Assembly (NCBI RefSeq): GCF_001194135.2
Contig: NC_068985.1
Location: 103,912,823-103,954,879, forward strand
DNA: 42,057 nucleotides
From: Octopus bimaculoides
Lineage: Eukaryota
Direction: 5' to 3'
The position numbers and the translations under genes were made by a program. Shown piece after piece: positions 7,475 to 42,057 of this stretch; position 1 is the first letter of the stretch; the number at the start of each line of letters is the position of its first letter. Under the pieces are notes generated by a model. It searched no databases. It was not told the origin of the DNA and was given only the letters and a program-made list of their open reading frames with translations.

Positions 7475-9231
7475 AGCTGTATAAGAAACAATGAAATCAG
7501 CAGAGATATCACAATTGCAGAACATCACAATTGTTGGTCAATCACAGCTTCAGAATAACAAGATACTAATGTTTAACAGTAACTGCAAGACTTGCTGTTA
7601 GAACATTGCTCAAATACAGAGTGAAAAAAAGAAAAGATTATAAATTAAACGATATTGGATAAACCTAACATTCTTTGCAATTAAGGATGCAACAAATGTT
7701 ATATCCAAATATAACAAGATAATTTGATCTGGACATGATAAATATTAAGGTCAGTATAAATATAGATTGTTATAAATATCTGGTAAGTTGTTTTCATTTG
7801 TGGAATTAAAGAAATCAACTCAGCTGCTAGCATGATCGTCCAGCAATCTAACAGTTTCTATTTAATTGCTTACCATCGTCAAATAATGTATCTACATTTT
7901 TGACTGCAATTAAAGCAGGAATTAATTAACCTACAGCTGGCATAAACAATCCAACATGGACAACATTTAATTAAAAAAATAATAAAAATGACTCATATTT
8001 TTTTTTTTTTCAATTTTACTTTCTTTAAATAAATCGGAATTTGTTGAAACTTTCAACAGTTAATTATTATTTTATCATGAAAATATAAAAACATTAACCA
8101 ATAATCTTTTTTTCTTGACACAGATACAATCTTATAAGAGAATAAACATTAGACATACAACGGTATAAAAAAATAAATGCATATAAATACACTTAACCAT
8201 AAAAAAAACACAAATATACAAATAGACGCATTCATACACACATATATAAACACCCATATAGTCATATATACATAACTGTCAGCTTCAAATTTTCAGTAAG
8301 TGGCATGTAGTGAAACAGAAAAACAACTGGTTTATCTTCGATAGAATATGTGCTCATGAAAGCATGGATATTATATCTCAGAACACATAGCACTGCCATC
8401 TGGCTCAACATTTGTTTGACAAAAGGCACAATTTGTTGGAAAAATAGGTGTTACTCTTTGGGGTTTCCGCCCCATCTCCTCTATCTCAGATAACATACAA
8501 AAATCAAGTGAGCAATTTCCTAGTAAATATAGAAAACGGCAGCAAAATATGTTGGTGTTGGATAAAAAAGTAAGTTTGCTTAGTCTTCAGGATAGAATAA
8601 ACGTATAATGCTTATCACAAGTCCAGAGTCATTCAAATTGATATTTTCAAATTGTATATGAACTTTCTGAACATAAATACACTTATACAATGATACTCAG
8701 CAGTGTATGCTTATCTTCCTTAAGTAAACAATTTTTAGGTTATCTAAAAATAGTTTACATGGTTTCCTTTTTTTTTTTTTTTTTTAAATTCTTTCCTCCC
8801 AATAAATCATTTTATAACAACCATTTTTCTATTGGTTTACAAACAAACTCTTTTACAAGAAAAATGTATGGCAGTGTTTGAACTTACAACATTGATATAA
8901 TAGTACTCTTCGAAATGTCCAACAAAAGTCAGATGCTTTTTTAACTCACCAAGCTTATTTCATTAATGACTTGATGAAAATCAGAAATGAAATAAGAGGT
9001 TTTCATTGAGCAAAGTAAATAGCATATACTTTATACTATTCACAGCTGGATATCAGGAAAAGTTCTACTTTCTTGCATACATCACAATTCCTTTCTTCAT
9101 ATTTTTGTTTTCACCATAGCTGGCTATAACCTCCAGCCCTTTAAACCAGTATTCCATATCAAAAAGACATACTGGTAGTGAGTTACAAGTTTCCAGAATT
9201 CATTAGCCAAAGTTCATTTTCAGGTTCCCAG
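7475..9231 (-). other. Probable 3' UTR of the ETS gene (distal end undefined)
   Basis: About 1.7 kb directly downstream of the stop, with no recognisable SINE or long microsatellite, unlike the flanks; several ATTTA pentamers on the minus strand. Confidence 0.45.
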
Positions 9232-9884
9232 TCAATAGTATGTTTGTGTATTCTCTTCATTGAAAAGGCTTGATACATCTAGATAGGAAGCATTCTGATT
9301 GAAGTGTTGCTCCAGGCTGTAACAAGGCTGCGACATACTTGGAATATAGGATAATTTTTGTTTCTTACTGGTCTGCAGAGGTGGTGAATACTCAGGTAGC
9401 TCAGAGCCATAGGGAGAGGATGTATTCAGTGGTCTTTTACTATTGAAAACTATACCTGATGAAGTGCTTTGCATCGATGAAGAAGGAGACGATGAAGAGG
9501 CTGGTGTTACAGGCATCGTGGCAGGGTAACCCGAAATATCATACGGCTGAACCATGGCTGTTGATTCATCAGTTTCCTTATTCTTTGACTGATGGTTTGA
9601 ACGGCTCGATGATTTCAGCAACTCATCAAAATTGAATTTGTAAGTTGCTTTCTTTCCATGGATTTTATGTACATAGTTTTTATCGTAATAATACCGAATT
9701 GCGCGGGAGAGCTTCTCATAAGTCATCTGTTTGCGTCGCTTACGTTCACCCCATCGCTTAGCTAACTCTTCTTGGTTCAGAATAGTGAAATGGCCTTCAT
9801 CTCCTTCCCAACGAATGCAATTACTGTTTGTTTTGTCACACAGAAGCTTAATTAGGAATTGCCACAACTGAATATGTCCAGACT
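9232..9884 (-). CDS. ETS-domain transcription factor, terminal coding exon (ETS domain ~9628-9882 plus Ser/Pro-rich C-terminal tail)
   Basis: Translation SGHIQLWQFLIKLLCD...WGERKRRKQMTYEKLSRAIRYYYDKN...YKFNF has the three conserved Trp and the KLSRxxRYY recognition helix of ETS domains. Pyrimidine tract and acceptor ttttcttttcaataatag|AG at 9885; stop at 9232-9234. Confidence 0.97.
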
Positions 9885-10721
9885 CTATTATTGAAAAGAA
9901 AAAAGAAAAAAGGAAAAATAACATAAATATTATTTAAAATATAAACATTAGAGAATTAAATTAAAAAAAAGAAAACAACAGATTATGACTTCATAAATAG
10001 CATTAATCTCACATTAAATAAATGGAAGGGGTTGGAAAGCTGGCAAATCTAATTAAATGTTGATCTAAATGTTCTACAATATTTAGTTTTGTCTCTCTAT
10101 AGAGTGTGTTTAACTCCCTCATGCATCTAAATTTTCATCCCTTTGGGAATAAATGAGAAATAAAAACCAATAATATATAGGATTACTCCATTTGATTACA
10201 CCCACCTTTTTCTATGAAATTCAATGAGTGCCAGACTTAAACAAAAGTCAATATTTAGTAAATGATACAAAGTATGAAAACTAAGATTGAGTTACTAACA
10301 AATGAATGGGACATTTTGCTGTCTTAATGCATGGAACAAGTATTTTACAAGGATATCCCTTCTCAGTAGCAATGAACCTTTCAGTAATTTTATTCACTGA
10401 AACAATTACTTTCTTATTTTCATAATGGGCCTGTATACCAATTCATTCTCATATTAGATATGAAGAAGTCTTAAAAAGAGCATCTTAATGAATGCCCCGA
10501 AATACAGTTACAGAATGAAGAATGTAGATTATCAGCCATGTTCTGGAGCAGCTAAATAACTGATATGCAAAAACCATCCATTTGATGGATACCTTTAGTA
10601 GGAAGGAAAAGAGAGAAACGACCAAGGCCATCATCTTTTTTCTAATTAAAAGGAACAGTGTTCTAGAGACTAAACAAAATTGATCTTTAATAATCACTGG
10701 TGATATAGAATATTCCCTTAC

Positions 10722-10781
10722 CTGGAATATGTGACATCAATTGTTGGAACGTCATGCCACAGATCTTGTCAGGACTTTCTT
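10722..10781 (-). CDS. ETS gene exon, 60 nt, phase 1-1 (E)ESPDKICGMTFQQLMSHIP
   Basis: Acceptor ttttttaatttcag|, donor CCAG|gtaagg; G+AG junction gives Glu in frame with the ETS exon; resembles the ERG/FLI pre-ETS motif DPYQILGPTSSRL. Confidence 0.9.
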
Positions 10782-10872
10782 CTGAAATTAAAAAAAAAAA
10801 AGTAATCATGTTAATTAATAAAAGCAAGTGCAAAATTATTAAATTGTTTTTGAATTTTAATTTATGTATTAA

Positions 10873-11093
10873 CCCTTTAGTATTTAAACTGGCCATATCC
10901 GGCCAAAAGTATTCTGCTTGTTTTATGTTCAAACTGGCCAAATCTGGTCTCTCACACCAACCCTACAATATCGTTTTAAAAATTAACAGCTACCTCATCA
11001 AAATCTCATAGCTACAAGATAATGCATGATTAGTTCAAAACAATGTGGATGAAAAAACATTAATTTTGGCAGAATAATGCAAACACTAAAGGG
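10873..11093. mobile_element. piggyBac-type MITE
   Basis: 13-bp TIR CCCTTTAGTATTT / AAACACTAAAGGG (1 mismatch) flanked by TTAA at 10869-10872 and 11094-11097. Confidence 0.85.
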
Positions 11094-11164
11094 TTAAATA
11101 ATAATCTATATAGTTTTTTCCTCTTTTGAAAATACAGTATTGTACATAATTCATGGAAGCAGTT

Positions 11165-11330
11165 TTTTTTTTGTATGCAGCTGTGACTGTGTGGTTATAA
11201 GAAGCTTGCTTTCCAGCCATGTGGTCTTAGACTTGGTCCCACTGTCTTCTACAATACCCCTAGGCCAACCAAAGCTTTGTGAGTGAATTTGTAAGACAGA
11301 AACTAAAAGAAGCCTGTTATACATTATATA
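11165..11330 (+). mobile_element. SINE family 1, 5' part
   Basis: CTGTGTGGTTATAAGAAGCTTGCTTTCC...GGCCAACCAAAGCTTTGTGAGTGAATTTG similar to 17071 and 23362 copies. Confidence 0.7.
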
Positions 11331-11371
11331 TATAGGGTTCAAATTGTACAAAAAAAAAAAAACAGAAGACA

Positions 11372-11490
11372 GAGACAGGTGAGGGGACAACGAACAAGGT
11401 GTATTAATTCGATGCTCAGGAAAAATAGAAGAGACTTCGACATTTCGAGCCTATGCTCTTCTACAGAAAGGAATGAGGAAAGAAAACCGA
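11372..11490 (+). repeat. Dispersed repeat, homologous to 5460-5590
   Basis: Direct sequence similarity to the reverse complement of 5460-5590. Confidence 0.6.
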
Positions 11491-13212
11491 GAGAAAATAC
11501 ATCTTGTCTTGTCATCACTTTGCAGCTGTAAATGAGCATCACCATCAGACAAGCGAGGTTGTTTATTTCCACTCTTCCATGGAGAAAATATCTGACCACG
11601 AGAGATAACCTTGCTTCAAAACAGATTAATGTTGGCAAGAGGAAGGGCATCCAATCATAGAAAATCTGCCTGAACAAATTCTGTCAGACAGAATTTGTAG
11701 TGGTGGTGGTGGTGAGGATGATGATGTTGATGATTGATGCATGTGTGAATGTATAAATTTTGGGAGACAATAATATTTTACAGTACTTTTAGAATTGTTT
11801 CTGAGACTGTGTAAGCTATTGTGTTGATAATTTCATAATCATAGCTTCAGGAAAAAGATGACAATAGCTACTCAAGTTTATATCTAAATTATTTATGAAA
11901 CACACAAGTAGATACTTGTCTACAATTATCATTAAAGAGTATCATAGCAAAGGGCAGCAGAACCAGTAGAGTAGCCAAAAAATAAAACCCCACTAAAACA
12001 TCTTTCCTACAAACTTGTCAGTGAAGTACTCAATACCAAGTCAATTAAAATCTTGATGAATTTAACAATTGCCAGATTTTTGTACCATTGCAATTTCTCA
12101 TAATAATCACATATATCTGCCAAATGTAAAAAGTGTATCTCCTAAGATAGACTTTCTCTTCAAAACCAGTAACTATTTTAGCTGAGAACTGCTACGACTC
12201 TTTTATAAAACATAAGTGAATCATACACAACTCTACAACTAACCTATCAGGGATGTAGCAGATCTTACTTATACAAACATCCAACTCTGACTGGTTAGCA
12301 AACCTACACTCCCTTAACACATTAACCTAATCACTCCCACATAAGTAATTCTGTATAAGCTCTTTGTCATTTCTATAATTGATACAACAGTTCCTGCTCC
12401 CTAGAGCTAGCAAATCCTATAAGCTATTAAATTCTTAGCTTCATTCTTTTAATATTGTCTGTACAGTGCCTTCATCTAAAACACTAAAAAACTTCAACTA
12501 AAACTGTTAATGATTTAAAATTGAAGTTTACAGTAAGCTTTTTCTTTATTTTCTTACTTTTGTTTTTGCCAGAATATGAAGATATTAGGAATGAAGAAAT
12601 ATCAGTCTTCTCAAGATTCCACTTTATAAATGTTTTCTCTATTCTAGCATGGGTTAGATAAATATATTATCGAGGCATTGTTTACAGCTAGATGCTTTTC
12701 CTGCTGCTAACCATAAACAACTATATTATCAAGGTGTTGTTTTGTAACCTGATGTCTTTCCAGCCCCAAAGTAAGAGATGCCTTAATCCATGCATCTTTG
12801 AAAGCTCTTAGCAAATAGATAATTTAGTGACAAGGCAATAACAACAAGGTCATAACTAATTTATTATATATCTCTCAAATTTATATTTGTATATATCTGA
12901 GCAACAAATTGACAGGCAGTGCATTCAATCAATGAAGTAACATCCTATTAAACTAATGACTCAGAAAAAAAATCGGAAGCCAGTTTGAAGTTAGAAGTGG
13001 CTACTATATGACAATTATGTCCTGTTACATCAATAAAACTGAAAGGATGGTATTCAGTGTCAGATGACTCAGTTCAAATTAACTTTTACAGAACTCTGTT
13101 CAATACTTTGCTCTAGTAAGCTGCAGAGATCAGATAGAAATGCATACCAAAAGGACAGTTACTTCCACTACAGCTACTACTACTACTACTACTTATTATT
13201 ATTATTATTATT

Positions 13213-13420
13213 GAAAGTGGCTAGCTGGCAGTATTGTTAGCACACCAGGCAAAATGCTTAGCGGTATTTCATCTGAGTTCAAATTCCGCTGAGGTTGACC
13301 TTGCCTTTCATCTTTTCGGGGTTGATTAAATAAGTACCAGTTATGCACTGGGACCGATGTAATCAACGTACTCCCTTCCCCAAAATTTGAGACCTTGTGC
13401 TTCCAGTAGAAAGGATTATT
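13213..13420 (+). mobile_element. SINE family 3 (GCCTTTCATCCTTTCGGGGTCGATAAAATAAGTACCAG central domain)
   Basis: GCTGGCAG..GTTAGCAC..GGCAAAATGCTTAGCGGTATTTC..GAGTTCAAATTCC head, central domain and TTA tail; related copies at ~13715-13905, 24296-24410, 24560-24700, 32035-32190, 34095-34260, 34735-34820, 39920-40140. Confidence 0.75.
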
Positions 13421-15449
13421 TTTATTATTATCCTTTCATGATCAAGTACAAGGATCAATATAATCGACTGGCACCCTCATACAAAATTGTAAGCTTTGTG
13501 CCTGTAGTAGAAAGGATTATTATTATCATGATAATAATAATAATAATAATAATAATTATTATTATTATTATTATAAACAGATCTAAAGCCCAAAGAATTG
13601 AACTAGGACCAGCCATACTGATATTTAGAAGATATAATTAAAAAAAAAAAAACATGTGGAAAACCAAATGAAAAACCAAAAAAAGCAAAGAAGCAGATTA
13701 ATATTAGAAAATGACCAATAAGGTGGTGAGTTGACAGAGTTGGTCGCATGTTGGGCAAAATGCTTGCTAGCATTTCGTTCATCTTTACGTTGTGAGTTCA
13801 TACTTTTGAGGTCGTTAAAATAAATACCAGTTGAGTACTGGAATTGATTTGATTTACTTTTCCTGTCCACCACAACTGCTGGGTTTTTTTTGCCAAAATT
13901 TGAAACCAACAGGAAAAACTGAGCTTAATGCTAGCCATAAGATAGCAAGGTATAAGTACACAAGCCACCCCAATTCCAAACTACAGTTTCGATGTTTCGT
14001 TAGGAAAACAAATGGAAGAGAACTCAATTGCAGAATTGAGAAAGAGGAATGTCAAAAAGAGGTAGCAACCAAAAGCCCATCAATATGTTACATTGTCACA
14101 AAGAAAATATATAATCAGCTTTCAGTATATTAGGGATACACATTTTCTCTGTTCCTGATGGACGGAATACAATGAAATCCTAGTAGGATTTGATCTTAGG
14201 CATTCAAGGTATATACGGCAATATGTAATATCTATCACAATTCTGTGGTAGCCAAATTACAAGCTGAATTAATAAGGGCCATTATCGTGTAAGTTATAGT
14301 ACGCTAGTAAGAACAGAGTGACGTCCCTTGGTTATGACATACCAACCATCATTTGATGAGTCAAATTGTAACCACAGTTTCGTGTTTCTTCCGTTTTTTT
14401 CTTTTTATTATTATTATTATTATTATTTATTTATTTAACATCTCTCTTTCTTCTCTTTTCATTCTCACACTCCCTTATCAGTGACAACACGGTGGCTTTT
14501 GTTCCATCTACACCCACGATGTCAGCAAAGAAATATTTTTACTTTTATTTTTATTCTTTTTTTTTCCCTCCAACAGATACAGTTGTTTTTAAAAAATCTA
14601 TTTACTCAATTCACTGTGTGTGTGTGTGTATCAGAATGTCTAAATACTGAAAATATTTTTTGTGTACCAGAGAAATAAATAAGTGAAGTGTACGTGAATG
14701 CTTGTACGTCTGTGTGTGTATCTGTATATTTACATGTATGTGGGCGCGGGTGATTAAGTACACTTGTTTAGTCTCGGGTCAGCCCTGATCGAGTAGACAG
14801 ACCTGTGATAAAAAGCTTTTCAGCCGTGACCATCCTGTTTATATATATATATAAATACAACGGGGTTAGCGCCCGATAGAGGGTAAAGTAAAGACATCTC
14901 TGACAGCTCCCACAACAAAAATGTCTTAATTATTTGTTTCATGACTCACTGCGCACTTATTGACAATAACTTAATGACAATAACAAAGGATTATCGCCTT
15001 ACACAAGCCTAAATTAAAATCGCAATGTAACAAAATCTTATAATGTCACATTAGTAAACCCGGAACCAATTCGGAAATGCTGTGCCCTTTTACACATTAA
15101 ATCCAACGTGGGTAGCGAACGCCTTCCCATTCATCCATTATTTACTATGGTCCTGTTTGCCGAGGACTACATTGTCCAATGTTCCCTATCTTATTTAAAA
15201 TAGGTGTGATCTGAGAGAAGTTTGGCTGCTATTTTTAGCTGGTTGGGTGAGTATGTAGAAGCCCTGTCGTTGACAGGAAGACAATATAGAAACTACCACA
15301 CACCTACATATGTACGTGCGGACACACACACGAACACGTGCTTATAGAAACAATCTATTGATGCCTATCAAGTTGATAGACTCAAATTTTAGAGAGTAAC
15401 AGGCAAAAATTATCGATACAATTATTGCACAAACACATACACATATGTT

Positions 15450-15502
<53 letters not shown>

Positions 15503-15929
15503 TTGTATGTATGTAAATAAATAAATATATAAATATATATATATACATACATGTACACATACATGCAACTAAACACACACGTTGCTAATTGATATTAAAG
15601 AGATAAACAGGTGTTTCAGAATGTCTATTGTACAGACATTGTCCATAGACGTTGACAGTCTAATCTATGTGATTAAGCTACCTTCAACCTATATTTAGAC
15701 ACACCTACATATTGGCAGAACAATGGATTTCAACTACACAGACCGGAACAACATACAATTCTATTTCATCATAAAAAAAAGGAGAGGACAAGTTGAAATA
15801 ATGTAGCTTCCTACCGTAACACTATTCTTGGAAAAAAAAGACAGATGATTGTGTTTGATCATAGGTTTGTTTGATATCAGAGACAACTCGGGGTTAAACA
15901 ATAACAATGCACACACACACACATATATA

Positions 15930-16110
15930 TATCATCATCATTTGATATCTATTTTCCATGCTGGCATGGGTTGGACGGTTTAAAAGTGCTGCCAGGTCAG
16001 AAGACTGCACCAAGTGCAACTGTCTGCTTTGGCATGTTTTCAATAGCTGGATGCCCTTCCTGATACCAACCATTTTACAGTGTACTGGGTGCTTTTAACA
16101 TAGCATCACT
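15930..16110 (-). mobile_element. SINE/LINE 3' end with (ATG)n tail
   Basis: CATCATCAT..TTTTCCATGCTGGCATGGGTTGGACGG...GCTGGATGCCCTTCC; related copies at ~6125-6250, 11530-11690, 18290-18370, 21840-22030, 27960-28060. Confidence 0.7.
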
Positions 16111-16852
16111 ACCATATATATATATATATATCATGTGTGTGTGTGTAGAAATAATACATATATATATATATTTGTGGGAGAGGGGGTTCCTCTACCCATC
16201 GTTATCACGACGCAGTGAAGAGAGCAAAATGTAGTTTTACAGAAGATGAAGTGGAAACAGTTCCAGCAAGCCAGATATACTCATGTTCACAGACTTCAAC
16301 AACACCAGTCACAAGAATAGACACTTTGTGGTCACAATGTCTGCTAGAAATAGCAGCTAAATCACCCTCAAATCACATCTTACATTATTAAGAAAGGAGA
16401 GGAGACATTGGATTGTGTAACCCTGGACAAATTTCTAGAGAGATGGACAAGGATGGAATGCCACCTTGGTCATATGCCAGATCAATCAGAGGTGATATGA
16501 GACTAAACATCATGGATATTACACAAAGCAATAAGTTGTTGGTTTGTGTGGTGTCCACATGCTAAATATAGCACCCAAATTACCTCCAAACCACACTTTA
16601 CCACCAGGCACTTTGGATCTTTGGATAAAGACATCTTCAGTACATCATTTAAAAATAATAAGAGATCATAAGCCCGTGAGGTCAGAGTTCTGCTCTTAGA
16701 GATAACTAATTAAGCATTCTGAGGTGTGAAAATACATTCTAATTGAAATCATTTGATGATGACAATGATGATGATATCACTATGGCAACAACATCATTCA
16801 TCATGATGATAAATATTAACAATCAATGCGGAAGATTGATGAGTGAACTTAC

Positions 16853-17026
16853 CAGAAATTTTCTTACACGATCTTTGTTTCTTGTTTATTACTGTGTTGT
16901 TGGTTTGGCTGCAGTTGTTGCTGCCGCTGAGAATGTTGTTGGTATGGTTGCTGTTGTGGTTGTTGTTGACATTGCTTACATTGTTATTTTCGTAAGATGG
17001 TGATGGAGTACATCTTGATGTGCTAG
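16853..17026 (-). CDS. ETS gene exon, 174 nt, phase 1-1, Asn-rich with basic patch
   Basis: Acceptor tttttgttttttgttacag|, donor TCTG|gtaagt; open frame (T)STSRCTPSPSYENNNVSNVNNNHNSNHTNNILSGSNNCSQTNNTVINKKQRSCKKIS; both junctions in frame. Confidence 0.85.
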
Positions 17027-17070
17027 CTGTAACAAAAAACAAAAAAAAGATATATATATGTATATATATA

Positions 17071-17202
17071 GGCGCGGGAGTGGCTGTGTGGTAAGTAGCT
17101 TGCTTACCAGCCACATGGTTCTAGGTTCAGTTCTACTATAGCCTCAGGCCAACCAAAGACTTGTGAGTGGATTTGGTAGACAGAAAATGAAAGAAGCCCA
17201 TC

Positions 17203-17240
<38 letters not shown>

Positions 17241-17363
17241 GTGTGTGTATGTATATGTTTGTGTGTCTGTCCCCCCAACATCACTTGACAACCGATGCCG
17301 GTGTGTTTACATCCCCGTAACTCAGTGGTTCGGCAAAAGAGACCGATAGAATAAGTACAAGGG
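17071..17363 (+). mobile_element. SINE family 1 with internal (TA)n(TG)n
   Basis: Head GGCGCGGGAGTGGCTGTGTGGTAAGTAGC; body shared with 97-410. Confidence 0.8.
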
Positions 17364-17747
17364 TTGAGATTATATGTATGTGTATATGTATGTGTGTATG
17401 TATGTGTGTACATATATTCATTCGTTCGTTCCTTCCTTTGATTTTTGCATGCTAGCTTGGATTAAACGAATTGCTTTGAAAAGGAGTTTTCATTCCATTT
17501 GTCTTCAGAAGCACAACATTAAGGGACAGGTTGTTGCTGAGGAAATGATAACAAGCATTACTGCCCATAGCTTAGCTAAGCCCAGAATGTAAGTGTTCAT
17601 ACAAACACACAGGTACATGTACACTAGAGGATATTTCAGATATTGTTCTAGCAAGGAGATGATGAAGGCTGAAGAAACTAAATACAATAACAAACCATAA
17701 AGAAATATGTGGGGCAGGGGTGATAAGAGTGATACGAAGACACTTAC

Positions 17748-17801
17748 TGGGGTCAAAGAAGCTCGGGTTAGATGCCATCGAAGGTGGGTAACTGTTGTAA
17801 G
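17748..17801 (-). CDS. ETS gene exon, 54 nt, phase 1-1 (T)YNSYPPSMASNPSFFDP
   Basis: Acceptor ttgttctatctttttcag|, donor CCCA|gtaagt; multiple of 3, in frame. Confidence 0.85.
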
Positions 17802-18796
17802 CTGAAAAAGATAGAACAAGACAGTAAATATCATGTAATACTTATAATAATTTGGCTGCAAGCATGGGCGTGTGGCTAAGAAGCTTGCCTTCCTAATTTT
17901 GTGGTTTCTGGTTCAATCCCACTGAGCAGCATCTTGGACAAATGTCTAGGCTGTGAGTGGATTTTGTAGATGGAAACTGCAAGAAATCTACCACAGCCTG
18001 TCATGTGTGTGTGTGTGAGTCCCCTTTACTTGACATCACATGACAATTGTTAATGAACAAGTGATGCTGTTTATTTCTATCTAGTCTTTCATGAGAAACA
18101 CGCAAAAATATGCTAGGAAACAGAAGAGTATCATAGGCTTAAGAACAAGGGATGCAAGTGCTCCCCTAAAATTTGGTTGAGGGGAATGAAAACACTTTGA
18201 ATATCCTCTTGAAAAATTAGGTTTGCTCCTGCTAGGAATTTTGTTCTCAAACTTAGGGGAACTTAGTATTGATGACATGAAGGGTATATGGCTGCAGAGA
18301 ATCTGTCTAAAAGTACTCCATCTGACTCATGCAAGCATGGAAATATGGATGTTAAAACTATGATGATGATCATGATTTCAGGATATCATCTCACCCACTT
18401 AGTAGCAGTAAATTCAAATTTGTATCACAGAATGATGACTTTTGTAGCAAAGGAAGTACAGTGATGTCATGGAAAAGTACGTACTTGGAGAAATCAGTTA
18501 AACTAAAATTATTGAGAGTCGTGGAGTCAACAAGGAAACCTCTAAACATCATGCCTCTATTTTACCTTCTTAATATTTTTGTTACCATTTGTCACTTTGT
18601 GGATTTAAGTCTCACACACACACACATACACACACATTCAATCACTCTCTCTCTCTCTCACACACGTAAATACGTGTCCACACACCCATATATAGACCCG
18701 CATACTCACTTCCTTCATTCATTACGAGTGCAGACAATTACACACTTATATTCCATGCATACACAAATATTTAAAAAAAAAAACGTAAATACTTAC

Positions 18797-18850
18797 TTGG
18801 TGCAAAAGAACCCGTTGTGGATGCAGGCGAAGAATTGGTGCTTCTTGCTG
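18797..18850 (-). CDS. ETS gene exon, 54 nt, phase 1-1 (S)ARSTNSSPASTTGSFAP
   Basis: Acceptor tttatgtttctcttctacag| (tandem CAGCAG), donor CCAA|gtaagt; in frame. Confidence 0.85.
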
Positions 18851-19669
18851 CTGTAGAAGAGAAACATAAAAGGCATTGTAAACCAAACTGCATCCTTCAA
18901 ATACATTGAAGTTACATATCAGATATAAAGGACATTTGTGAGGAAGCAATAGGTTACTTTACTGTCGATTCAAATGCTATGCTATCTCATATTTCACACA
19001 CAAACACAGCTGTGTGTTTGGTGGTCTGCACCAGAAAGATGTGTATTATTTTTTTCTTTTAAAAAGTGACGGAAAGAATACATTGGAGAGTGGGGAATCA
19101 ACGTTTCAGACAGCCTTTCTTCAGATTGCATATGACAGGAAGGAGATAATAGAAAGGCAGCGGAGTTTTATATTATCTATGTTTGAGAAACTGGCTGCAG
19201 TTGATGGGGAACACGAGGTGTAAGTTTGGATATATGGACAGGAAGAAGTGGGAGAGAGAAACTGGGTGAGAGAAGGAGAAGGAAAGAGAAATGAAATGAA
19301 AGGAAGTGGGTGATGGTGAGGTGAAGAGAAAAAGTGAGGTGGGAAGCGAGATGAATGATGAGAACGAGATGAATGAACTAAGAAGAAATGGAGGAGAAAG
19401 AAAATCCTCATTTAAACCAGTCAGGGACATAGTTCCAAGTTTGAATATGAAACATTGTTCCTTCTGTTTCTTTGAGTGCGTATGGATCTATGGATGCGCA
19501 TGGAATGGCTGGCTGGATTTTATAAGGTGTTATTGAAGAGAAATTTGTTCCCCACCCCAAAGTCCACCCCATGTCATCTAAGTCACTCACTCCGCACAGT
19601 GTATCACGATTGAGATGCACATGTCATAGGTTTGCCACCAGTGACCTAGGTTTCATTATATCTTTTATT

Positions 19670-20071
19670 TTTTATTTATTTCAGTCTTTATACTGTGGCC
19701 ATGCTGCAGCAAATGCCTTGAAGGGTTTAATCAAATAAACTGACCCCAGTGCTTATATTCTCAAGCCTGATACTTATCCTATCATCTCTTGCTCTTGAAC
19801 TGCTATGCTATGGGGATGTAAACAAACCGACACTGGTGGTCAAACGGTGGTAGGAGACAGACACAAGCACAAAGACACGCACATTTAGATACGAACACAC
19901 ACGTGTACGTATATATATGTGTATATGACAGGCTCCTTTCAGCTTACATCTAACAAATCCACTGTGGCTACCATGGAAGACATTTCCCCAAAGTGCAACA
20001 CAGTGAGATTGAACCCAGAACCATGTGGTTGGGAAGCATAATTCGTACTACACATCCATGCTTACACCTAT
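19670..20071 (-). mobile_element. SINE family 1, old copy
   Basis: Reverse complement of the family-1 head and 3' end with internal microsatellite. Confidence 0.7.
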
Positions 20072-20654
20072 ACATACAAGTATTTTAGTTTTAGATGAAT
20101 GTTTACAGATGCATGCTTTTCAAAACATGATGTAGGAAGATTGTTATTTTTATTTTCCTTCAAAGTCTTTTACATGTTACCTTATCCACCCGCTCTGCAC
20201 AGTGTGTCATGTAACATACAATGTCATTGGTTTATCACCAGTGACCCAATTTTAAGTAGGTTTCATTGTTTTAAAGACCTTTTGCAAAGTTTGAATCCTA
20301 AGATAAAGTTTAACAGAGCAAATTACCCAAAGAAAAAAATATGACTGAGTCATGTTATACATGCACATGCACACACATACACACGTGCGCGCACATACTG
20401 TCCCACCACCATTGATGGATTATATTTGTGTTGAGATGAAATAAATATTGATTCTATTGATGTCCCTTACAAAAGGACATCAAAATGATATGTGAGGTGA
20501 GATGAAAAGATTACAGTAAAAGAGAAAAGAGAAATGTAAAATAGAAAAAAAAAATTCAAAAAGAAAAGACTAAAATAGGAAAAGGAAAATGTTTAAAAAA
20601 AAGAGAATGTGACAAAAGAACATAAAAAAAAGAAAAAGACACAGCTGTACTTAC

Positions 20655-20693
20655 ATGGCATGATAGATTCCAGTGACATGTAGCAGACTGTCT
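20655..20693 (-). CDS. ETS gene exon, 39 nt, phase 1-1 (E)TVCYMSLESIMP
   Basis: Acceptor ttgtttttctcacaacag|, donor CCAT|gtaagt; in frame. Confidence 0.8.
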
Positions 20694-21232
20694 CTGTTGT
20701 GAGAAAAACAAGAGACAGAGATATATTAGAAAACGTAAGTAAGAGAGAGAGAAAGAGGAGATTGTTGTTGGTTGCTCACCTTATAACTATGTCTATGTGA
20801 GACCATCCCAAACAATGTGCTTACACTATAGGTCAGTGTTTAGGAAATCTTGAGAGACACAAACACACACACTCACACATAATCACAAATAATAGATTCA
20901 TATTCACACCTACATATATCATACTTGTATATTCTCACACAAGCTCATCTATACTCATTAGTTCACAAACACTCACACATATATATATGCATACACACAC
21001 ACACAACAAAAGTCACACAATGCTTAATTCACTCACACAAACATATACAAACGCAAAATCTCATACGCTACACATATGCACACTTACATACGTAGCTAAT
21101 TGCATCATAGACTGCATTAGATTAACAATAATAACAAAGAACAACAACAAAAATAAATGTCTGGTAAACGATGACATCACTGCATTGATTTAAGTCTATT
21201 TTCATTTCATTTATGCTTATCTCTTCCTTTTG

Positions 21233-21716
21233 NNNNNNNNNNNNNNNNNNNNNNNNNNNNNNNNNNNNNNNNNNNNNNNNNNNNNNNNNNNNNNNNNNNN
21301 NNNNNNNNNNNNNNNNNNNNNNNNNNNNNNNNNNNNNNNNNNNNNNNNNNNNNNNNNNNNNNNNNNNNNNNNNNNNNNNNNNNNNNNNNNNNNNNNNNNN
21401 NNNNNNNNNNNNNNNNNNNNNNNNNNNNNNNNNNNNNNNNNNNNNNNNNNNNNNNNNNNNNNNNNNNNNNNNNNNNNNNNNNNNNNNNNNNNNNNNNNNN
21501 NNNNNNNNNNNNNNNNNNNNNNNNNNNNNNNNNNNNNNNNNNNNNNNNNNNNNNNNNNNNNNNNNNNNNNNNNNNNNNNNNNNNNNNNNNNNNNNNNNNN
21601 NNNNNNNNNNNNNNNNNNNNNNNNNNNNNNNNNNNNNNNNNNNNNNNNNNNNNNNNNNNNNNNNNNNNNNNNNNNNNNNNNNNNNNNNNNNNNNNNNNNN
21701 NNNNNNNNNNNNNNNN
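21233..21716. other. Assembly gap inside an ETS intron (other gaps: 6269-6481, 28607-28869, 29824-30097, 33670-33679, 37296-37503, 38554-38692)
   Basis: Runs of N, mostly flanked by microsatellites or a palindrome. Confidence 0.99.
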
Positions 21717-21766
<50 letters not shown>

Positions 21767-23039
21767 ATGTATACATATATATTATATACACATAAGCACA
21801 CACTCCTGTACATATATAATATGCATGTGTGTATAAACATCATCGTCGTCATCTTTTAACATCAATCTTCCATGTTGGTATGGGTTGCACAGTTTGACAG
21901 GAGCCAAATGGCCTGGAGACTGCATCATGTTCCAGTCTCCACTTTGCTGTGGTTTCTACAGTTGGATACCCTTCCTAATGCCAACCACTATACAAATTGT
22001 ACTGAATTCTTTTTCAGGGCACCAGTGCAAGCAAACAAATCGTTTGCTTTTGTTTTTGTTTTATTAATTAATCAACTTATTCAATTCACGGTTTTCAATT
22101 AAGAGTTGTTTCAAGCTTTTATTACATCTTTAATTACTTTAATAGTTTTTTAATTCTTCCTCGTCTTTATACTAATTACAACAATGGCTTGTATTTTCCT
22201 AACGAGTATATTGGATGTCAATTGGGCCAAAGCTGTTTCTTCATGATGCAAATTGCTGTCAAATGTGGAATAAATGAGCAATGCTTATCATCCTGTTAAT
22301 TAGATCAGTCCTACTTGAGCAGACCTCTGATCAAAGGCATTTAAAGCTTATCCATCCAGTTTTGCGGGGAGGCTTATCTTTTCAAACATTGAATATTTGA
22401 AAATATTTTCTAATGTGTCATTTCTTTTGTTACAACAGTAGTACATGATGTGAGTGAAATTTGGCTGCTGTTTCTAACTGTTCCACTGACTGTAATGAGG
22501 TTTCTTTCTTTAAGCGATCAGACTTACTGAAGAGTGAAATACAACAGGGGTTTGTCCATGTCTAAATCGTTGTTTTATGACAATTAAAATAGCACATAAA
22601 CTGAACATATAAGAAGTACTTGCTGAGCGAGTTCATTCTTTCTTCAGGTTTTTATCTAAGACTATATAGTCTACGGTAGTGATTTGATGGAGATTTAGAT
22701 GCTATTTTCAGCAGGACAAGTAACTTAAGTTGAGGCTCCTTTGTTATGTCATCAAATGAGATTTGGTCACTCAACTTGATAGAGTGATCCGATGGCCTAT
22801 TACTCTAGAGTTTCCACAATTTGTTACTGGTTCCTCAAACAAGAATACACTGGATCAAGTTTCCAATTTATTCTGGGGTGATAACTGAGAATACTTTGGA
22901 GATTCTACAGAGCAACAGACCATTTATGCATGCACATGTGTGTGTGTGTAAGAGAGAGAGAAAGAGGTACACAGCTGAACAAAATTGCACTCTTATCTAC
23001 ACAAAACATAGAGGATATATATATATAAAGGTATAGTAC

Positions 23040-23093
23040 CTTGTACACTGTTTGAATACCATTCTGGTGTCTGAGCAATACTGCAGTTGGAAC
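23040..23093 (-). CDS. ETS gene exon, 54 nt, phase 1-1 (G)SNCSIAQTPEWYSNSVQ
   Basis: Acceptor ttcttcttttgtcattctag|, donor CAAG|gtacta; in frame. Confidence 0.8.
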
Positions 23094-23361
23094 CTAGAAT
23101 GACAAAAGAAGAAGTGTAAGTATTTTACCTGATACTGAAATAGTTTTAGAAATGAGGCAATTAAAACCTAAACTTATGAAACAAAGGTTTCAGAAAACTA
23201 CAAAACCACCATGTTTCCAGATGTTCAAATACATACAGACAAGGAAATAAAAGTTAATTGGTTAGGTAATGCCATTCAGAACCACAAGGAAAGAAAGTAT
23301 TTCCTCGTCAAGTTATCAATTCCAACAAATGTGTGTGCATACATACACATCTCTTCTTCTT

Positions 23362-23645
23362 TTTTTACTCTTTTTACTTGTTTCAGGACTTATTCTTTGT
23401 AAGCCTAGTACTTATTCTATCAATGTTGGAGGGGGGGGGGGGACAAACACAGACACACAAACACATATATACATATATACGATGGGCTTCTTTCAGTTTC
23501 CGTCTACCAAATCCACTCACAAGGCTTTGGTCGGCCCGAGGCTATAGTGGAAGACACTTGCCCAAGGTGTCACGCAGTGGGACTTAACCCGGAACCATGT
23601 GGTTGGTAAGCAAGCTACTTACCACACAGCCACTCCTGCACCTAT
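23362..23645 (-). mobile_element. SINE family 1, well-preserved copy
   Basis: CAGTTTCCGTCTACCAAATCCACTCACAAGGCTTTGG...GAACCATGTGGTTGGTAAGCAAGCTACTTACCACACAGCCACTCC. Confidence 0.8.
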
Positions 23646-23836
23646 ACACACATATATTATATTAACTTGAAAAATAGGTAAAGGTTAACATCAGGAAAGG
23701 CATCTGGTCGTAAAAGAATGCCTCAAAAGTATATTCAAATAATCCATGTTACCATCGAAAAACAAATATAAAAGGAACAGATACAAGAATGTATGTGTGT
23801 GTGTGTGTGTGTGCGTGTGTATAAAGTTATATTTAC

Positions 23837-23881
23837 CTGAATTGCTTGGTACTTCTGGCACTGATTGTCCACTTGACCAGG
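23837..23881 (-). CDS. ETS gene exon, 45 nt, phase 1-1 (S)WSSGQSVPEVPSNS
   Basis: Acceptor tcttgttgtttcccttgtag|, donor TCAG|gtaaat; in frame. Confidence 0.82.
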
Positions 23882-24059
23882 CTACAAGGGAAACAACAAG
23901 AGACTAATGAGTGTCAATGCTCTTTCTCCAACATTAATCATCATACTATTGGTATGATGATTAATCTCCTCCTCTCTATCACAAGTGAATAATAACATCA
24001 ACACCATCATCAACAGCATCACCATCATCATTTCCATTCTTTTTGTCATCATCATTATT

Positions 24060-24088
24060 TACTACTACTACTTCTACTACTACTACTT

Positions 24089-24158
<70 letters not shown>

Positions 24159-24247
24159 AAAAAGGGAATGTTGTATAATCTCAGATTTCCATATATGGAT
24201 AAAAGATAGGCTGGAATGTTTTACATTATAAGATGATGATAATAATA

Positions 24248-24297
<50 letters not shown>
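24060..24297. repeat. (TAC)n and (TAA)n microsatellites
   Basis: Directly visible at 24060-24157 and 24240-24297. Confidence 0.95.
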
Positions 24298-25034
24298 CCT
24301 TTCTGCTCTGGGCCTGAAATTTTGTTAGGAGAGTCTTGTCAATTACATTGATGTCAGGGGTCAACCCTGAAAGGATGAAAGGTGAAGTTAATCTCAATGG
24401 CTTTTGACCTCTTCAAGATGAAATGTTGTGAAACTTTTTGTGTAGTGTAGTAATGAATCTGCCAGAAGGACAAGACTTATGAGGACAATACAAAGACAAA
24501 TTGCTGACATAAAAGCAATGGTCATAAATTTGTGGGGGGGAAATGTTAGTTAAGTCAACTGGATTGTTTGACTGGGAGTTTAATTAACTCACAAAATATT
24601 AAAAGCTAAGTTGACTTCAGTGGGATTTGAACTCAGAATGTAAGGAGCAATAACTAAATGCTGCAAAGGCATTTTGTCTGATGATGTAACTATCTTCCAA
24701 TCCATGATAAAAGTCTGATTGTAGAAAGTATTGTTTTTATGATGCTGAATTATATAAGCAAACAAATACAATTACAGACAGAAGAGGAAGTAGAATATAA
24801 CGGATTATGATGAAATAACAACAAAAATTAATAAAGGGGACAAATAGCTATTCTAAATGTGGCCACTAGGACGAAAATAAAATCAAAATTAATGGAGGGA
24901 ATAAACAAACAAAATAACAAAAAAAGCAAAACTTATTAACCAAATAAACAAGCACAGAGCAAAAGAGAAAAGATAGGGAGAGGAGAGAAGAGAGAGTAAA
25001 GACAGAGAGAGTAAAGACAGAGAGAGATAGAATT

Positions 25035-25087
<53 letters not shown>

Positions 25088-25216
25088 AAAAAAACAAAAG
25101 AGAACAAAACTACGAAACAACCAAAATATTTCTGCTCTAAACACAGAAATTTAGTTCATACCTGACCCATGAGAAAAGACCAAAGTTCACGACAGCAAAC
25201 CTGTTCTTTGCCTAAC

Positions 25217-25270
25217 TCGTTGGACAGGTGTGTAGAAATGGAACGCTTTGCCCGGAGGCTTGTGGACTGT
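25217..25270 (-). CDS. Candidate cryptic/alternative 54-nt phase 1-1 exon (Y)SPQASGQSVPFLHTCPT
   Basis: CTAAC branch-point motif ~40 nt upstream with no intervening AG, acceptor tacag|, weak donor A|gttagg; 93-nt intron from the 25364 donor; in frame. Confidence 0.3.
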
Positions 25271-25363
25271 CTGTATACATATGTGGCCAGAATGGTATGA
25301 AGTGGTTGTTAGGTAGAGCGTTGGTCAGAGGCTAGTTTTGGAACGAGTGCTGGAAGTACTTAC

Positions 25364-25450
25364 ACTGGATTTGGCAGTCCAGACCGGGTCTATTCTCGCT
25401 TTTAACAGACGAGGAAAAAGAAGACACCGAACTTAAAGTTGTCAAGGTGG
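25364..25450 (-). CDS. ETS gene exon, 87 nt, phase 1-1 (S)TLTTLSSVSSFSSSVKSENRPGLDCQIQ
   Basis: Acceptor tctcttttaatttatattgcag|, donor CAGT|gtaagt; read-through past the donor hits TAG at 25334-25332. Confidence 0.82.
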
Positions 25451-27390
25451 CTGCAATATAAATTAAAAGAGAAAGAGGAATTAAAATCATGACAATGTTA
25501 AGGAGACTTCAATTTCAAATTACCATATATGCTAGAACATAAGGTGATTGGGTGTATCAGATTGCTCTGTCCCCAAGTCTTTATTTATAATGTAGGTTTT
25601 CAATTATATTCACTGTATAAAATTAACTAACATTATTTCACAATGGGTTACAAGTGTTAATTTTGGTTCAATGTATGAGAAATTTTCACAAAGTGTTGAG
25701 ACACGTGAGAAGGTGTCACCTTGAACCTTTTCAAGAAATCATGTATTTAAATATTCAAAAGTACCGGTAACTTCAAAGGTTAATGTGATTGGCTTGATTA
25801 ACACACATAACTGACCAATCATATTGGGCTATTGTCTGTAAACAGCTCACAAACTCTTGGTATGTTAATTATGTTAATTAAATGCTACTAATGTACAGCT
25901 GCCCTGAAAGAAACAGGATAAACAGAATGTAACATAGGATCCCAGGTTACTATATACCAATCACTGTAAACAGTGATTGGTGTACAGTGGCCAGGTTTGC
26001 AGTATTGTTGTTTTAAGGTGTTAAACAGCTTACAATTCTTGCATATCTTTTAAACATAACCTTACAATTAATCCAGCTTATGAGACATGCAAAATATTGA
26101 GTAGTAGAATTACAAGTACTATGCGGATGTCTTATGCTGTTCTCCATCACGAATGGCAAAATTTTAAAGCACAGGATGTCAAGATACAGATTATATAATT
26201 TGCGTTTAACTCTTGATACAAACCCACCTGAGACCACCCCCTCGGAGCTATGGAAACATATGTCTTGTGTTAAAGGGAATGAAATTAAAACTTTCATCAA
26301 AATTTTATTATTATTAAGCTGGTTTTTGGAACATGAATATAAAAATAATTTTACTAAATTCATCCTGATTTTCAAAATTAATTTCTACCATACAGAATTG
26401 AATTTCAACATAATCATGAGAACAAAAAGGTCAAGAAAAGCTCTTTTTTTTTTGTGGGGACGAGTAAGGTTCAAATTTCTTATCTATATACAGATGTATT
26501 TCATTAACTATTATTCTTGAGAAGTTTGGTAACAAAGGGACAAAGAGCTCAGGATGAGACGGTAAAAATCTCAGTTCTTATGATTCAGTCATTGTATTAC
26601 TACAATAAAGGAGGTCAGATGATACTCAGAAAGTAGAAATAGGATCAAAATACCAAAAGTTTATAAATGAAATGTTATCAAACAGGGCTTTTACAATGAA
26701 TTCTTGTGTAAGCGTTACCTGCTTTGGAAATGTTAGTTACACTTCCTGCTGTGTAAAGTGAGATGTGAAACTTGTCCTAGTTGTGACAGTATTGCACAAT
26801 AGAAAAATGACAGGCATTTCAATGGCTGACCTAGGGCACCAGTTTATCAAATGTTTTTTAACCCTTGGCAGGATATCAGCTCAGCACTGCAAGTTAACGA
26901 AACAATTTGTCAGTCATATACAGCAACACTACCAAAAACAATGGCTTAACCTCCTCATCATCATGTGACCTACTGAGCAGGAGTACTCATTTTACTGTGT
27001 TCACACTGAGTGAAAATAGACAAATTTTCTGAATGTGATCTCATGCCACAGTATTTGGACAGCATGATCAACAATAAAAACGAGGCTGCCCATGGCTAGA
27101 ATAATGCCAACCAGATCATCTTTTAATCCATTATCATCTCCTTATCACATGGTTTTACATTTTACACACAACAGAGCTGACTAAAAATACTCAAACATCA
27201 CCACCTCCATCACTACAACGCTCCCATTGCTTATATTTTATATTGCTTTCTTTGTGTCCTTTTCAGTAAATACCAGCTTCAAGAAACCTCTTACTTAACT
27301 TACATGGCAGTGGCAAATACAGACAGCATATGATTAAATAAAGTAAATAAAATTTAATTAAATAAACGAGTAAATTAATTATTAACTCAC

Positions 27391-27711
27391 ATGATTCCCT
27401 TCTAATTATATCTTGAATATCTTCCCAGCGTGCTGCCTGATCTTCATGAGAAAGTTCTTGGTGATGAAATTTAGAAATGATTTTATGTTCCTCATAGCTG
27501 GGAGGTGGAGCCCGAGGTAGATCTAGGCAGTGGTCAGCAGTTTCTATATGAAAAGCACTGCCCGGAGAAGCCATCAGAGAGAACGGAAGATCAGTCAGTT
27601 TAGAAGGAACTGTTTGGTCATCTTCTAAATGATGCAGGTCCATGGATTCTAATCCAGCCTCATCACTTATACTGCTGCGAAGGCCAAGGACTTTGTCAAA
27701 GAATTTTTTCT
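27391..27711 (-). CDS. ETS gene N-terminal exon, 321 nt, phase 1-1 (ATG at 27643 may be the start, or the frame continues upstream)
   Basis: Acceptor ttttttcatgaatttccag|, donor TCAT|gtgagt; open frame KKFFDKVLGLRSSISDEAGLESMDLHHLEDD...APPPSYEEH...RWEDIQDIIRRES. Confidence 0.88.
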
Positions 27712-28606: not shown

Positions 28607-29455
28607 NNNNNNNNNNNNNNNNNNNNNNNNNNNNNNNNNNNNNNNNNNNNNNNNNNNNNNNNNNNNNNNNNNNNNNNNNNNNNNNNNNNNNNNNNNNNNN
28701 NNNNNNNNNNNNNNNNNNNNNNNNNNNNNNNNNNNNNNNNNNNNNNNNNNNNNNNNNNNNNNNNNNNNNNNNNNNNNNNNNNNNNNNNNNNNNNNNNNNN
28801 NNNNNNNNNNNNNNNNNNNNNNNNNNNNNNNNNNNNNNNNNNNNNNNNNNNNNNNNNNNNNNNNNNNNNTATATATATATATATATATATATATATGCAT
28901 GTATGTATTCTTTTGATCATTATATGCACGAATATATAAACATATAATCCTTTATCCTTTATAAACATGCATATAAACACACATTCATATATGCATATAT
29001 ACTACATACATACGTGACTATGTGATTCAAATACTGCAGTATAACACACACACACACACACATACACACACACATTATGTGATGTTTGGAAAAGTTGAAT
29101 GTTTAACCAGTCAGTGATGGTTAGAAAGAAATTAATAGCAAGAAGAGGAAAAGGAAAAGATGAAACAAAAGAGGGTGGGAGTGAACTTGCTTATTTTTCT
29201 TCCTTTTTTTTAAATTTCATTTTTATTTATTTATTTATTTTTGTACTTTTTGTCTCTCTGCTATCAGAATCTCTACTGTTTGCTGACTTTCAAACATTTG
29301 TCTTCGCATCAGCTGAGGTTAGAGATCAGAACTGGTTCTATTTACATTTTTTAGTTTAACTTCAGTTTCGAGACTCTGTGAGACTCTGTGGTGGTGGGGT
29401 GGGGTTATTTAAGAAAAGAAAAAAATATTTAGAAAAACATGAACAAGGAATAGAG

Positions 29456-29697: not shown

Positions 29698-30097
29698 GAG
29701 TCGTTGTGATGGTGGTGGAGGTAACTATGATGGTGTGGTGGTGGTGATAGCATTGACGGTCATGGTGGTGGGAGGAATGTGAGCTAGATATGTAGAATGA
29801 ATGAAATACAATATGAATGAAATNNNNNNNNNNNNNNNNNNNNNNNNNNNNNNNNNNNNNNNNNNNNNNNNNNNNNNNNNNNNNNNNNNNNNNNNNNNNN
29901 NNNNNNNNNNNNNNNNNNNNNNNNNNNNNNNNNNNNNNNNNNNNNNNNNNNNNNNNNNNNNNNNNNNNNNNNNNNNNNNNNNNNNNNNNNNNNNNNNNNN
30001 NNNNNNNNNNNNNNNNNNNNNNNNNNNNNNNNNNNNNNNNNNNNNNNNNNNNNNNNNNNNNNNNNNNNNNNNNNNNNNNNNNNNNNNNNNNNNNNNN

Positions 30098-41973: not shown

Positions 41974-42057
41974 TGGAGGCGCGTGGCTTAGTGTTTAGGG
42001 AGTGTTGGACTCATGATCGTACGATTGTGGTTTCGATTCTTAGACCGGACGACGCGT
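41974..42057 (+). mobile_element. tRNA-derived SINE head, truncated by window end
   Basis: GGAGGCGCGTGGCTTAGTGTTTAGGG...GTTTCGATTC, similar to the 2453 head. Confidence 0.7.

Follow-up and report, generated by a model that had tools for sequence, protein, structure and literature searches.

An annotated FLI1-like gene of Octopus bimaculoides, probably a diverged and constrained PNT-less ERG-type ETS paralogue of cephalopods

The ERG-type ETS genes of octopuses are included in a survey of mollusc ETS factors (PMC10664356, Additional file 5), where XP_014780456.1 and XP_014780457.1 of Octopus bimaculoides appear as Ob-ETS-7 and Ob-ETS-8, XP_014780443.1 as Ob-ETS-6 and XP_029636101.1 of O. sinensis as Os-ETS-2; all four accessions are placed in the ERG subfamily, as 'FEV' type. 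A PNT-type ERG or Fli1 is not listed there for Octopus; its other entries include a protein of 198 aa from O. sinensis and a 'FEV'-type protein of 191 aa from Sepia. The gene analysed here lies on the minus strand of a 42,057-nt stretch of O. bimaculoides DNA (NC_068985.1, positions 103,912,823 to 103,954,879), which is referred to as the window and whose positions are used as coordinates. It is the already annotated gene encoding XP_014780456.1 and XP_014780457.1, present in RefSeq with two isoforms and in UniProt. The original prediction, derived from the sequence alone, had described it as hidden, which the RefSeq, UniProt and survey entries (Ob-ETS-7/8) contradict.

On the evidence given below, we consider it very probable that this annotated FLI1-like gene codes for an ETS transcription factor and is a diverged, constrained ERG-type paralogue of cephalopods, probably coleoid-wide, which is devoid of a PNT domain. 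As a discovery the gene matters little, being already contained in RefSeq, UniProt and the published survey; what the check adds is the finding that the hand-spliced model is exact, and that an assembly gap within the gene is harmless to its coding sequence. The 'FLI1-like' name, in addition, obscures the non-canonical status of what appears to be an old, strongly diverged and tightly constrained PNT-less paralogue.

The product spliced from the window, exactly 490 aa from the ATG at 27643, is 100% identical to XP_014780457.1 (P0224), annotated as "Friend leukemia integration 1 transcription factor-like" isoform X2, and is contained within XP_014780456.1 (P0222; isoform X1, 537 aa); the window holds 10 of the 11 coding exons of the gene. 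Gaps included, the window matches CM046605.1 of GCA_001194135.2 at 100% identity; it is AT-rich, rich in microsatellites and eukaryotic in character. Three sources were compared with the model. The first is a 1.6 kb RNA-seq contig (L001) from run SRR3401912, an octopus metatranscriptome (PMC11662614), encoding a protein of 384 aa (P0001, 86% identical). The second is a 536-aa protein (P0073), whose cluster includes XP_029636101.1, 'Friend leukemia integration 1 transcription factor', from O. sinensis, CAI9723259.1, 'FEV', from O. vulgaris, and UniProt A0A0L8GJP9, of 339 aa. The third is formed by two transcript-derived proteins, P0074 and P0256, which align over the full length of the gene product. 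The exons are the following, together with the 3' untranslated region (UTR).

27391..27711, minus strand: exon 1 (coding exon 2 of isoform X1); tblastn identity over 27712-27392 is 94% with P0073 and 57% with P0074.
25364..25450, minus strand: exon 2, 87 nt, acceptor ttgcag|, donor CAGT|gtaagt; tblastn match over 25454-25365.
23837..23881, minus strand: exon 3, 45 nt, junctions in agreement with the L001 cDNA.
23040..23093, minus strand: exon 4, 54 nt, from the L001 cDNA and the open frame.
20655..20693, minus strand: exon 5, 39 nt, from the L001 cDNA; it holds the Met at which the 339-aa UniProt model A0A0L8GJP9 begins.
18797..18850, minus strand: exon 6, 54 nt, from the L001 cDNA and the open frame.
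17748..17801, minus strand: exon 7, 54 nt, from the L001 cDNA and the open frame.
16853..17026, minus strand: exon 8, 174 nt, an Asn/Ser-rich low-complexity region, from the L001 cDNA; indels relative to L001 are multiples of 3.
10722..10781, minus strand: exon 9, 60 nt, from the L001 cDNA; it encodes ICGMTFQQLMSHIP, a short helix predicted by AlphaFold2 (AF2) right before the ETS domain.
9232..9884, minus strand: exon 10, with the complete ETS domain, the C-terminal tail and the stop TGA at 9234-9232, from the open reading frame (ORF) and the splice site given by the L001 cDNA.
9026..9231, minus strand: 3' UTR, minimum extent, the L001 cDNA being aligned through 9026.

The ten exons, from 27711 to 9232, join into a single open frame, with introns which are all GT-AG; donors are mostly gtaagt or gtgagt and acceptors are rich in pyrimidines. 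Exon 1 is preceded by an acceptor right before 27711 and followed by the donor CAT|gtgagt after 27391, and contains the ATG at 27643-27641. The ten GT-AG exons and the 490-aa frame had been predicted exactly to the base, and match XP_014780457.1 residue for residue. L001, from which exons 3-10 were derived, is spliced at 8 of the 9 junctions, as colinear blocks with GT-AG boundaries; P0073 maps exon by exon to its own O. sinensis genome, and the full-length spliced transcripts from which P0074 derives come from several RNA-seq runs (SRR27666067, SRR27666074 and SRR24189505). A single long ORF is present in 9232-27711; it extends over 9232-9924 of the minus strand and encodes the ETS domain. 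The statement that most exons are invisible among the listed ORFs calls for a caveat, as 6 of the 10 do lie inside ORFs of at least 50 aa, though as fragments only.

All 9 introns interrupt the frame in the same phase, after the first base of a codon, and the 8 internal exons (87, 45, 54, 39, 54, 54, 174 and 60 nt) are without exception divisible by three; each could therefore be skipped in frame. Exon 2, found in the proteins of Octopus and Argonauta and in P0256, is missing in frame from P0074. Two other ways of joining the first exons were rejected: a model based on L001 alone, using a donor at 25162, has its frame shut 8 codons upstream, P0073 indicating 25364 as the true donor; the joining of exon 1 through a weak donor at 25167 was discarded once exon 2 had been located at 25450-25364. 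Rfam and tRNA scans of the window gave no match. Some of the public models (P0223, P0221) differ at their ends: A0A0L8GJP9, which starts at the exon 5 Met, misses the N-terminal third, and the O. vulgaris 'FEV' protein CAI9723259.1 (510 aa) ends, after ...MQSTSS, in a tail which is hydrophobic and unrelated, and which probably reflects a wrongly called 3' end.

The ATG at 27643, taken as the start in the original prediction, is probably an internal one, used by the shorter isoform X2 only and not the main start, because isoform X1 has an additional upstream coding exon. Isoform X1 and the orthologues begin with this exon, MTLDYHISDF...TRE. The frame of exon 1 is moreover open and conserved between the acceptor at 27711 and the ATG (EKKFFDKVLGLRSS, with the motif EKKFFDKVLGLR), an in-frame stop is found 8 codons upstream of the acceptor, and the Met encoded at 27643 corresponds to a Lys in P0074. 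The upstream exon of X1 was not found within the window, either by tblastn with PAM30 or by blastn with the region of this exon from O. sinensis. The assembly places the coding start of X1 about 6.1 kb past window position 42057, behind two more gaps. In O. sinensis the upstream coding exon lies 23.2 kb upstream of exon 1.

The folded part of the product and its PPxY-type motif are located as follows.

9628..9873, minus strand: ETS DNA-binding domain, IQLWQF...YKFNF, detected as PF00178 on P0001 and P0073 and by phmmer against PDB (E = 4e-34).
9676-9714, minus strand: recognition helix KLSRAIRYYYDKN, within the ETS domain.
27485..27505, minus strand: PPSYEEH, a PPxY-type motif, present in all orthologues and in the paralogous protein P0125.

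In an AF2 run on a 12-sequence alignment, a confident fold was obtained only at residues ~305-415 (block-mean pLDDT ~74-92), with the element order a1-b1-b2-a2-a3-b3-b4 of a winged helix-turn-helix and a short helix on either side. The remainder is predicted as disordered, except for short helices at 23-32 and 113-131, and no folded N-terminal domain is present in the model. Similarly, a PNT domain was found neither in the window, where tblastn with three PNT-bearing ERG proteins matched the ETS exon only, nor in the full-length proteins, for which Pfam gives PF00178 only and the PNT HMM no match. Residues S380, R381, A382, R384 and Y385-387 (SRAxRYYY) are invariant across the 12-sequence alignment. 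In ETS-DNA complexes these residues read the GGA core. The recognition-helix residues being kept, binding to a GGA(A/T) core would therefore be most likely, as for other ETS factors. The product is predicted to be a nuclear, sequence-specific transcription factor, having as its only folded module the ETS domain in the C-terminal half; the part predicted as disordered carries the short conserved motifs EKKFFDKVLGLR, PPSY(EEH), EDQAARWEDIQDII and the C-terminal FNEEN..YY, among which the PPxY-type motif could recruit WW-domain proteins.

As for the subfamily, phmmer against PDB assigns 118-120 bits to FEV, ERG and FLI1, to be compared with 99.7 for ETS1, 98.9 for GABPA, 95.6 for ERF and at most 88 for ETV and ELK proteins. 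In Foldseek, the model reaches TM 0.89-0.94, at an rmsd of 0.8-1.7 A, against the crystal structures of FEV, ERG and FLI1, and the top 21 hits are all from the ERG group. The best database matches outside the window clade are all ERG, FLI1 or D-ETS-6. The original assignment to the ERG/FLI/FEV-type agrees with both bit scores and structural hits. An origin from a different ETS subfamily, such as an ERF- or ETS1-like one, with a resemblance to ERG arisen by chance, would find some support in the identity to ETS1, ERF and GABPA (50-52%), little below that to ERG, in the TYKFNF signature, which also occurs in human ERF, and in the scores of the window domain against ERG-type HMMs, no better than those of human ETS1 or ERF. 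This explanation is judged very unlikely, given the 20-bit lead of ERG, FLI1 and FEV over every other ETS domain in PDB, the uniform structural and database matches, and a position in the ERG-like part of a neighbor-joining (NJ) tree, described below, with ETS1 and GABPA outside.

Divergence was measured on the ETS domain, over 88 columns unless stated, the PDB 4irg sequence being used as the human ERG reference. The domain is 57% identical to human ERG, ungapped (49/82 for the segment IQLW..YKFNF), which is close to the ungapped ~51/85 of the earlier hand alignment; identities to FEV and to insect D-ETS-6 are 56% and 59%. By comparison, human ERG is 89-90% identical to D-ETS-6 and 66% to ETS1. 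The claim of a domain far more diverged than those of the usual ERG orthologues was well founded. That the gene may simply be the single octopus ERG orthologue, its low identity being an artefact of hand alignment, could be suggested by the FLI1-like RefSeq name and by the ERG/FLI/FEV proteins ranking first in PDB and Foldseek; yet the identity obtained by alignment tools remains at 57%, against 89-90% for insect ERG orthologues, a PNT domain is missing, and the same genome has a second ERG-type gene, nearer to ERG, 242 kb away. This possibility is regarded as highly improbable.

The second gene of O. bimaculoides encodes XP_014780443.1 (P0125), a 'Fli-1 homolog' of 361 aa, which shares 70% identity with human ERG in the ETS domain. 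On CM046605.1 its locus (L009) occupies 103,675,366-103,680,059 and the window gene 103,922,054-103,961,022; the two are about 242 kb apart, on the same strand. A paralog, rather than the sole ERG-type gene of the species, had indeed been foreseen. P0125 is encoded by 4 coding exons, with PPSYEEH in the first; as in the window gene, the complete ETS domain and the tail are in the last one, which in P0125 starts right before SGQVQLW. The intron preceding the ETS domain occupies the same position in both genes. The heptapeptide PPSYEEH is shared with P0125, P0117, P0142, P0145, P0187 and P0229, and variants are found in P0099 and P0205; the motif, or a close variant, occurs in the Patella 'protein FEV', in Gigantopelta, Aplysia and Lymnaea proteins and in a bryozoan 'ast-1-like' protein. 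None of the 31 PNT-bearing ERG proteins of the set contains it. The motif was not found to be discussed in the literature searched.

An NJ tree was built on 157 distinct ETS domains (88 columns, 200 bootstraps). Monophyly of the window clade is recovered in 199 of the 200 bootstraps. The clade is nested in the ERG-like part, where internal support is low and from which ETS1 and GABPA are excluded; its sister in the point tree is a PNT-less group carrying PPSYEEH, whose members are molluscs and a bryozoan. Of 10 diagnostic columns, 3 are shared by the window gene with the PPSYEEH group and 2 with canonical ERG, while it is unique at 5. A cephalopod paralogue within the PNT-less, PPSYEEH-containing ERG-like group is the best-supported reading of these data, though not a proven one: the gene would belong to a 'FEV/ast-1-like' group of lophotrochozoans, with a sister copy 242 kb away on the same strand. 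Descent from a canonical, PNT-bearing ERG which lost its PNT and diverged in cephalopods, instead of from duplication of a PPSYEEH gene, has to be weighed against it. The weakness of the ETS tree and the nearly tied HMM scores leave room for such a history, as does the published survey, where no PNT-type ERG/Fli1 is given for Octopus, so that the canonical gene could be the one which changed. The exact PPSYEEH, however, is common to P0125 and to gastropod and bryozoan PNT-less proteins and is missing from all PNT-bearing ERGs; furthermore, the point tree pairs the window clade with the PPSYEEH group, and P0125 is linked on the same chromosome and shares the exon logic. Loss of PNT from a canonical ERG is, for these reasons, held to be unlikely.

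A number of observations weigh against the interpretation as a PNT-less cephalopod paralogue, or against parts of it. The ETS phylogeny, which had been indicated as a check, does nest the clade in the ERG-like part, but the grouping with the PPSYEEH proteins reaches a bootstrap of only 43%, and in 15% of the replicates canonical ERGs are part of the sister group. The two subfamily HMMs score within about 3 bits of each other (134.7 vs 131.4), and the placement in the PPSYEEH group leans mainly on one short motif. The ETS domain is almost as near to ETS1, ERF and GABPA (50-52%) as to ERG (57%), and long-branch effects are therefore possible. A third ERG-type gene possibly exists (O. sinensis XP_029655685.2, Sepia CAE1235152.1). 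The 'coleoid-wide' distribution, which draws on the transcript-only lineages P0074 and P0256, is no more than probable. Finally, DNA binding, the function of the PPxY-type motif and the fate of the alternative isoform described below are predictions, and this isoform is known from one contig of one metatranscriptome.

The distribution of the gene was evaluated by an exhaustive HMMER scan with P0001 of 1.84 billion representatives, which yielded two clusters above 50% identity, P0073 (84%) and P0074 (493 aa, 54%), both carrying about 155 N-terminal residues beyond P0001. Orthologues were found only in Octopus spp., in Argonauta hians and in the two lineages represented by transcripts only (P0074, P0256). 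This distribution is consistent with a cephalopod-restricted gene, and agrees with the restriction originally suggested, close relatives having been found only in cephalopods. A word-indexed protein search had missed the RefSeq proteins of the gene itself, which the exhaustive scan recovered; likewise, the result of the word-indexed search that exon 1 is without homologue was a false negative, homologues being found by exhaustive HMMER. The third-best match of the scan, P0075, is a protein of 764 aa with an unusual architecture, in which two ETS domains are combined with several zinc fingers of the C2H2 type.

The derived residues of the ETS domain are common to Octopus, Argonauta hians (P0257) and the transcript-only P0074 and P0256, which are 44-46% identical overall to the octopod proteins and 61% to one another. 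Relative to O. sinensis, dN/dS is 0.023 in the ETS domain and 0.30 in the rest of the protein; relative to L001, the values are 0.07 and 0.29. Substitutions in exon 10 relative to L001 show a third-position excess (16/12/39 by codon position). Because the derived residues are shared by all orthologues and the dN/dS of the ETS domain is low, the divergence is judged from sequence comparison to be old. In octopods the gene is at present subject to strong purifying selection, and is neither currently fast-evolving nor a pseudogene. The label 'fast-evolving', used in the original prediction, does not fit a divergence which is common to all orthologues and an ETS dN/dS of 0.02-0.07 within octopods. 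The domain would have changed strongly on the stem lineage and have been nearly constant since.

A decaying duplicate, that is a pseudogene or non-functional copy, would account for the unusual divergence of the ETS domain and for the premature stop which L001 acquires through an alternative donor. Next to no credence is given to this explanation, in view of a frame intact over 10 exons, of the low ETS dN/dS, of derived residues conserved not only in Octopus and Argonauta but also in two lineages further removed, and of the full-length spliced transcripts present in several RNA-seq runs.

The alternative donor defines one further feature of the locus.

25162..25363, minus strand: exon 2 extension, 202 nt, ending at a second donor, CAG|gtatga, at 25162; from transcript L001.

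L001 is colinear with the genome through the extension and is then spliced from 25162 to exon 3, and a stop is met within the extension, 10 codons past exon 2. The segment 25399-25150, comprising the 3' end of exon 2 and the extension, matches O. sinensis at 100% identity and L001, from a third species, at 97%, while the flanking intron is mostly 84-98% identical to O. sinensis, with two bins at 68% just downstream. RNA folding of the extension gave no excess of structure (z = +1.9), Rfam gave no match, and the extension was not found in the P0074 transcripts. It looks like an ultraconserved 'poison' splice variant, and the corresponding isoform is plausibly a regulated, unproductive or truncating one. 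The conserved alternative donor and the PPSY motif are testable leads.

A more specific history may tentatively be proposed, in which we have rather less than even confidence. The gene would be a coleoid innovation, i.e. an ERG-like duplicate without PNT, whose DNA-binding domain underwent a burst of change on the cephalopod stem and was then frozen, with an output controlled by the ultraconserved alternative 5' splice site after exon 2, from which an isoform with a stop would result. The changes concerned would be LLELL to LIKLL in helix 1 and GKRYAY to GKKATY in the wing, together with others in the b1-b2 region and in the loop that precedes helix 3. If this were true, the freezing after the burst would suggest a new binding specificity or a new set of partners. 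An octopus brain atlas and a preprint on monoaminergic neurons give no gene-specific expression, and a role in blood or vascular development, raised originally as speculation, is pure speculation. When 'ERG/FLI1' or 'FEV' is used as a cephalopod marker (of haemocytes, endothelium or monoaminergic neurons) in single-cell or evo-devo studies, it should be considered that at least two ERG-type genes, linked and very unequally diverged, are present in octopus.

The genomic sequence surrounding the exons contains an assembly gap within the gene.

21233..21716, no strand: assembly gap (N run), non-coding, in intron 4; flanks colinear with O. sinensis L003.

The flanks of the gap are in the same orientation in L003 (22398-21717 vs 38297-38969 of L003, and 21232-19694 vs 39276-40839 of L003), which is free of Ns; there, the gap position is filled by about 306 bp, made up of (AT)n/(GA)n repeats and of A-rich unique sequence. 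Neither the cDNA nor any protein lacks residues between exons 4 and 5. Since the flanks are colinear and no residues are missing, the gap leaves coding continuity and frame unaffected. The newer O. bimaculoides assembly retains it. Six more gaps are found in the window (6269-6481, 28607-28869, 29824-30097, 33670-33679, 37296-37503 and 38554-38692); the four which lie in L010 (28607-38692) are retained in the chromosome-level assembly, while 6269-6481 is outside L010. Those of the six that are visible in the ORF translations have (TA)n or (CA)n microsatellites on their flanks.

Three short interspersed repeat families have multiple copies in the window (39899-40108 and 13195-13419 for one; 32903-33184, 17059-17365 and 181-402 for another; 23443-23646, 19661-20086 and 32737-32859 for the last) and many at the O. 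sinensis locus, with 67-92% identity. Three non-coding blocks, at 34819-34989 and 41506-41822 in the upstream intron and at 10179-10527 in intron 9, are 94-95% identical to O. sinensis, within surroundings which are about 80-90% identical; these blocks are possible regulatory elements.

When the locus is compared with known systems, XP_014780457.1 and XP_014780456.1 represent the same gene, with no difference in sequence, the window being without the first coding exon of X1; its orthologues are XP_029636101.1 of O. sinensis, the 'FEV' protein CAI9723259.1 of O. vulgaris and the FLI1-like protein of Argonauta hians. ERG, FLI1, FEV and D-ETS-6 (Ets21C) are the best sequence and structure matches, have the same recognition-helix residues and, like the window gene, contain the ETS domain and the tail in one terminal exon. 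The lack of a PNT domain is shared with FEV, whereas ERG, FLI1 and D-ETS-6 possess one. Members of the canonical ERG group are 85-90% identical to one another in the ETS domain, while the window gene is only 56-59% identical to them; the group is also without PPSYEEH, which the window gene has, and carries GKRYAY in the wing in place of GKKATY. With the PNT-less lophotrochozoan group (octopus XP_014780443.1, Patella, Gigantopelta, Aplysia, Lymnaea, Biomphalaria and the Watersipora 'ast-1-like' protein), the gene shares PPSYEEH and the TYKFNF end of the domain. The members of this group are about 70-73% identical to human ERG in the ETS domain, whereas the window gene is 57% identical to human ERG and 52-58% to the group; it is also longer (537 aa and 11 coding exons, vs 4 in P0125), and contains extra conserved motifs at both the N- and C-terminal ends.

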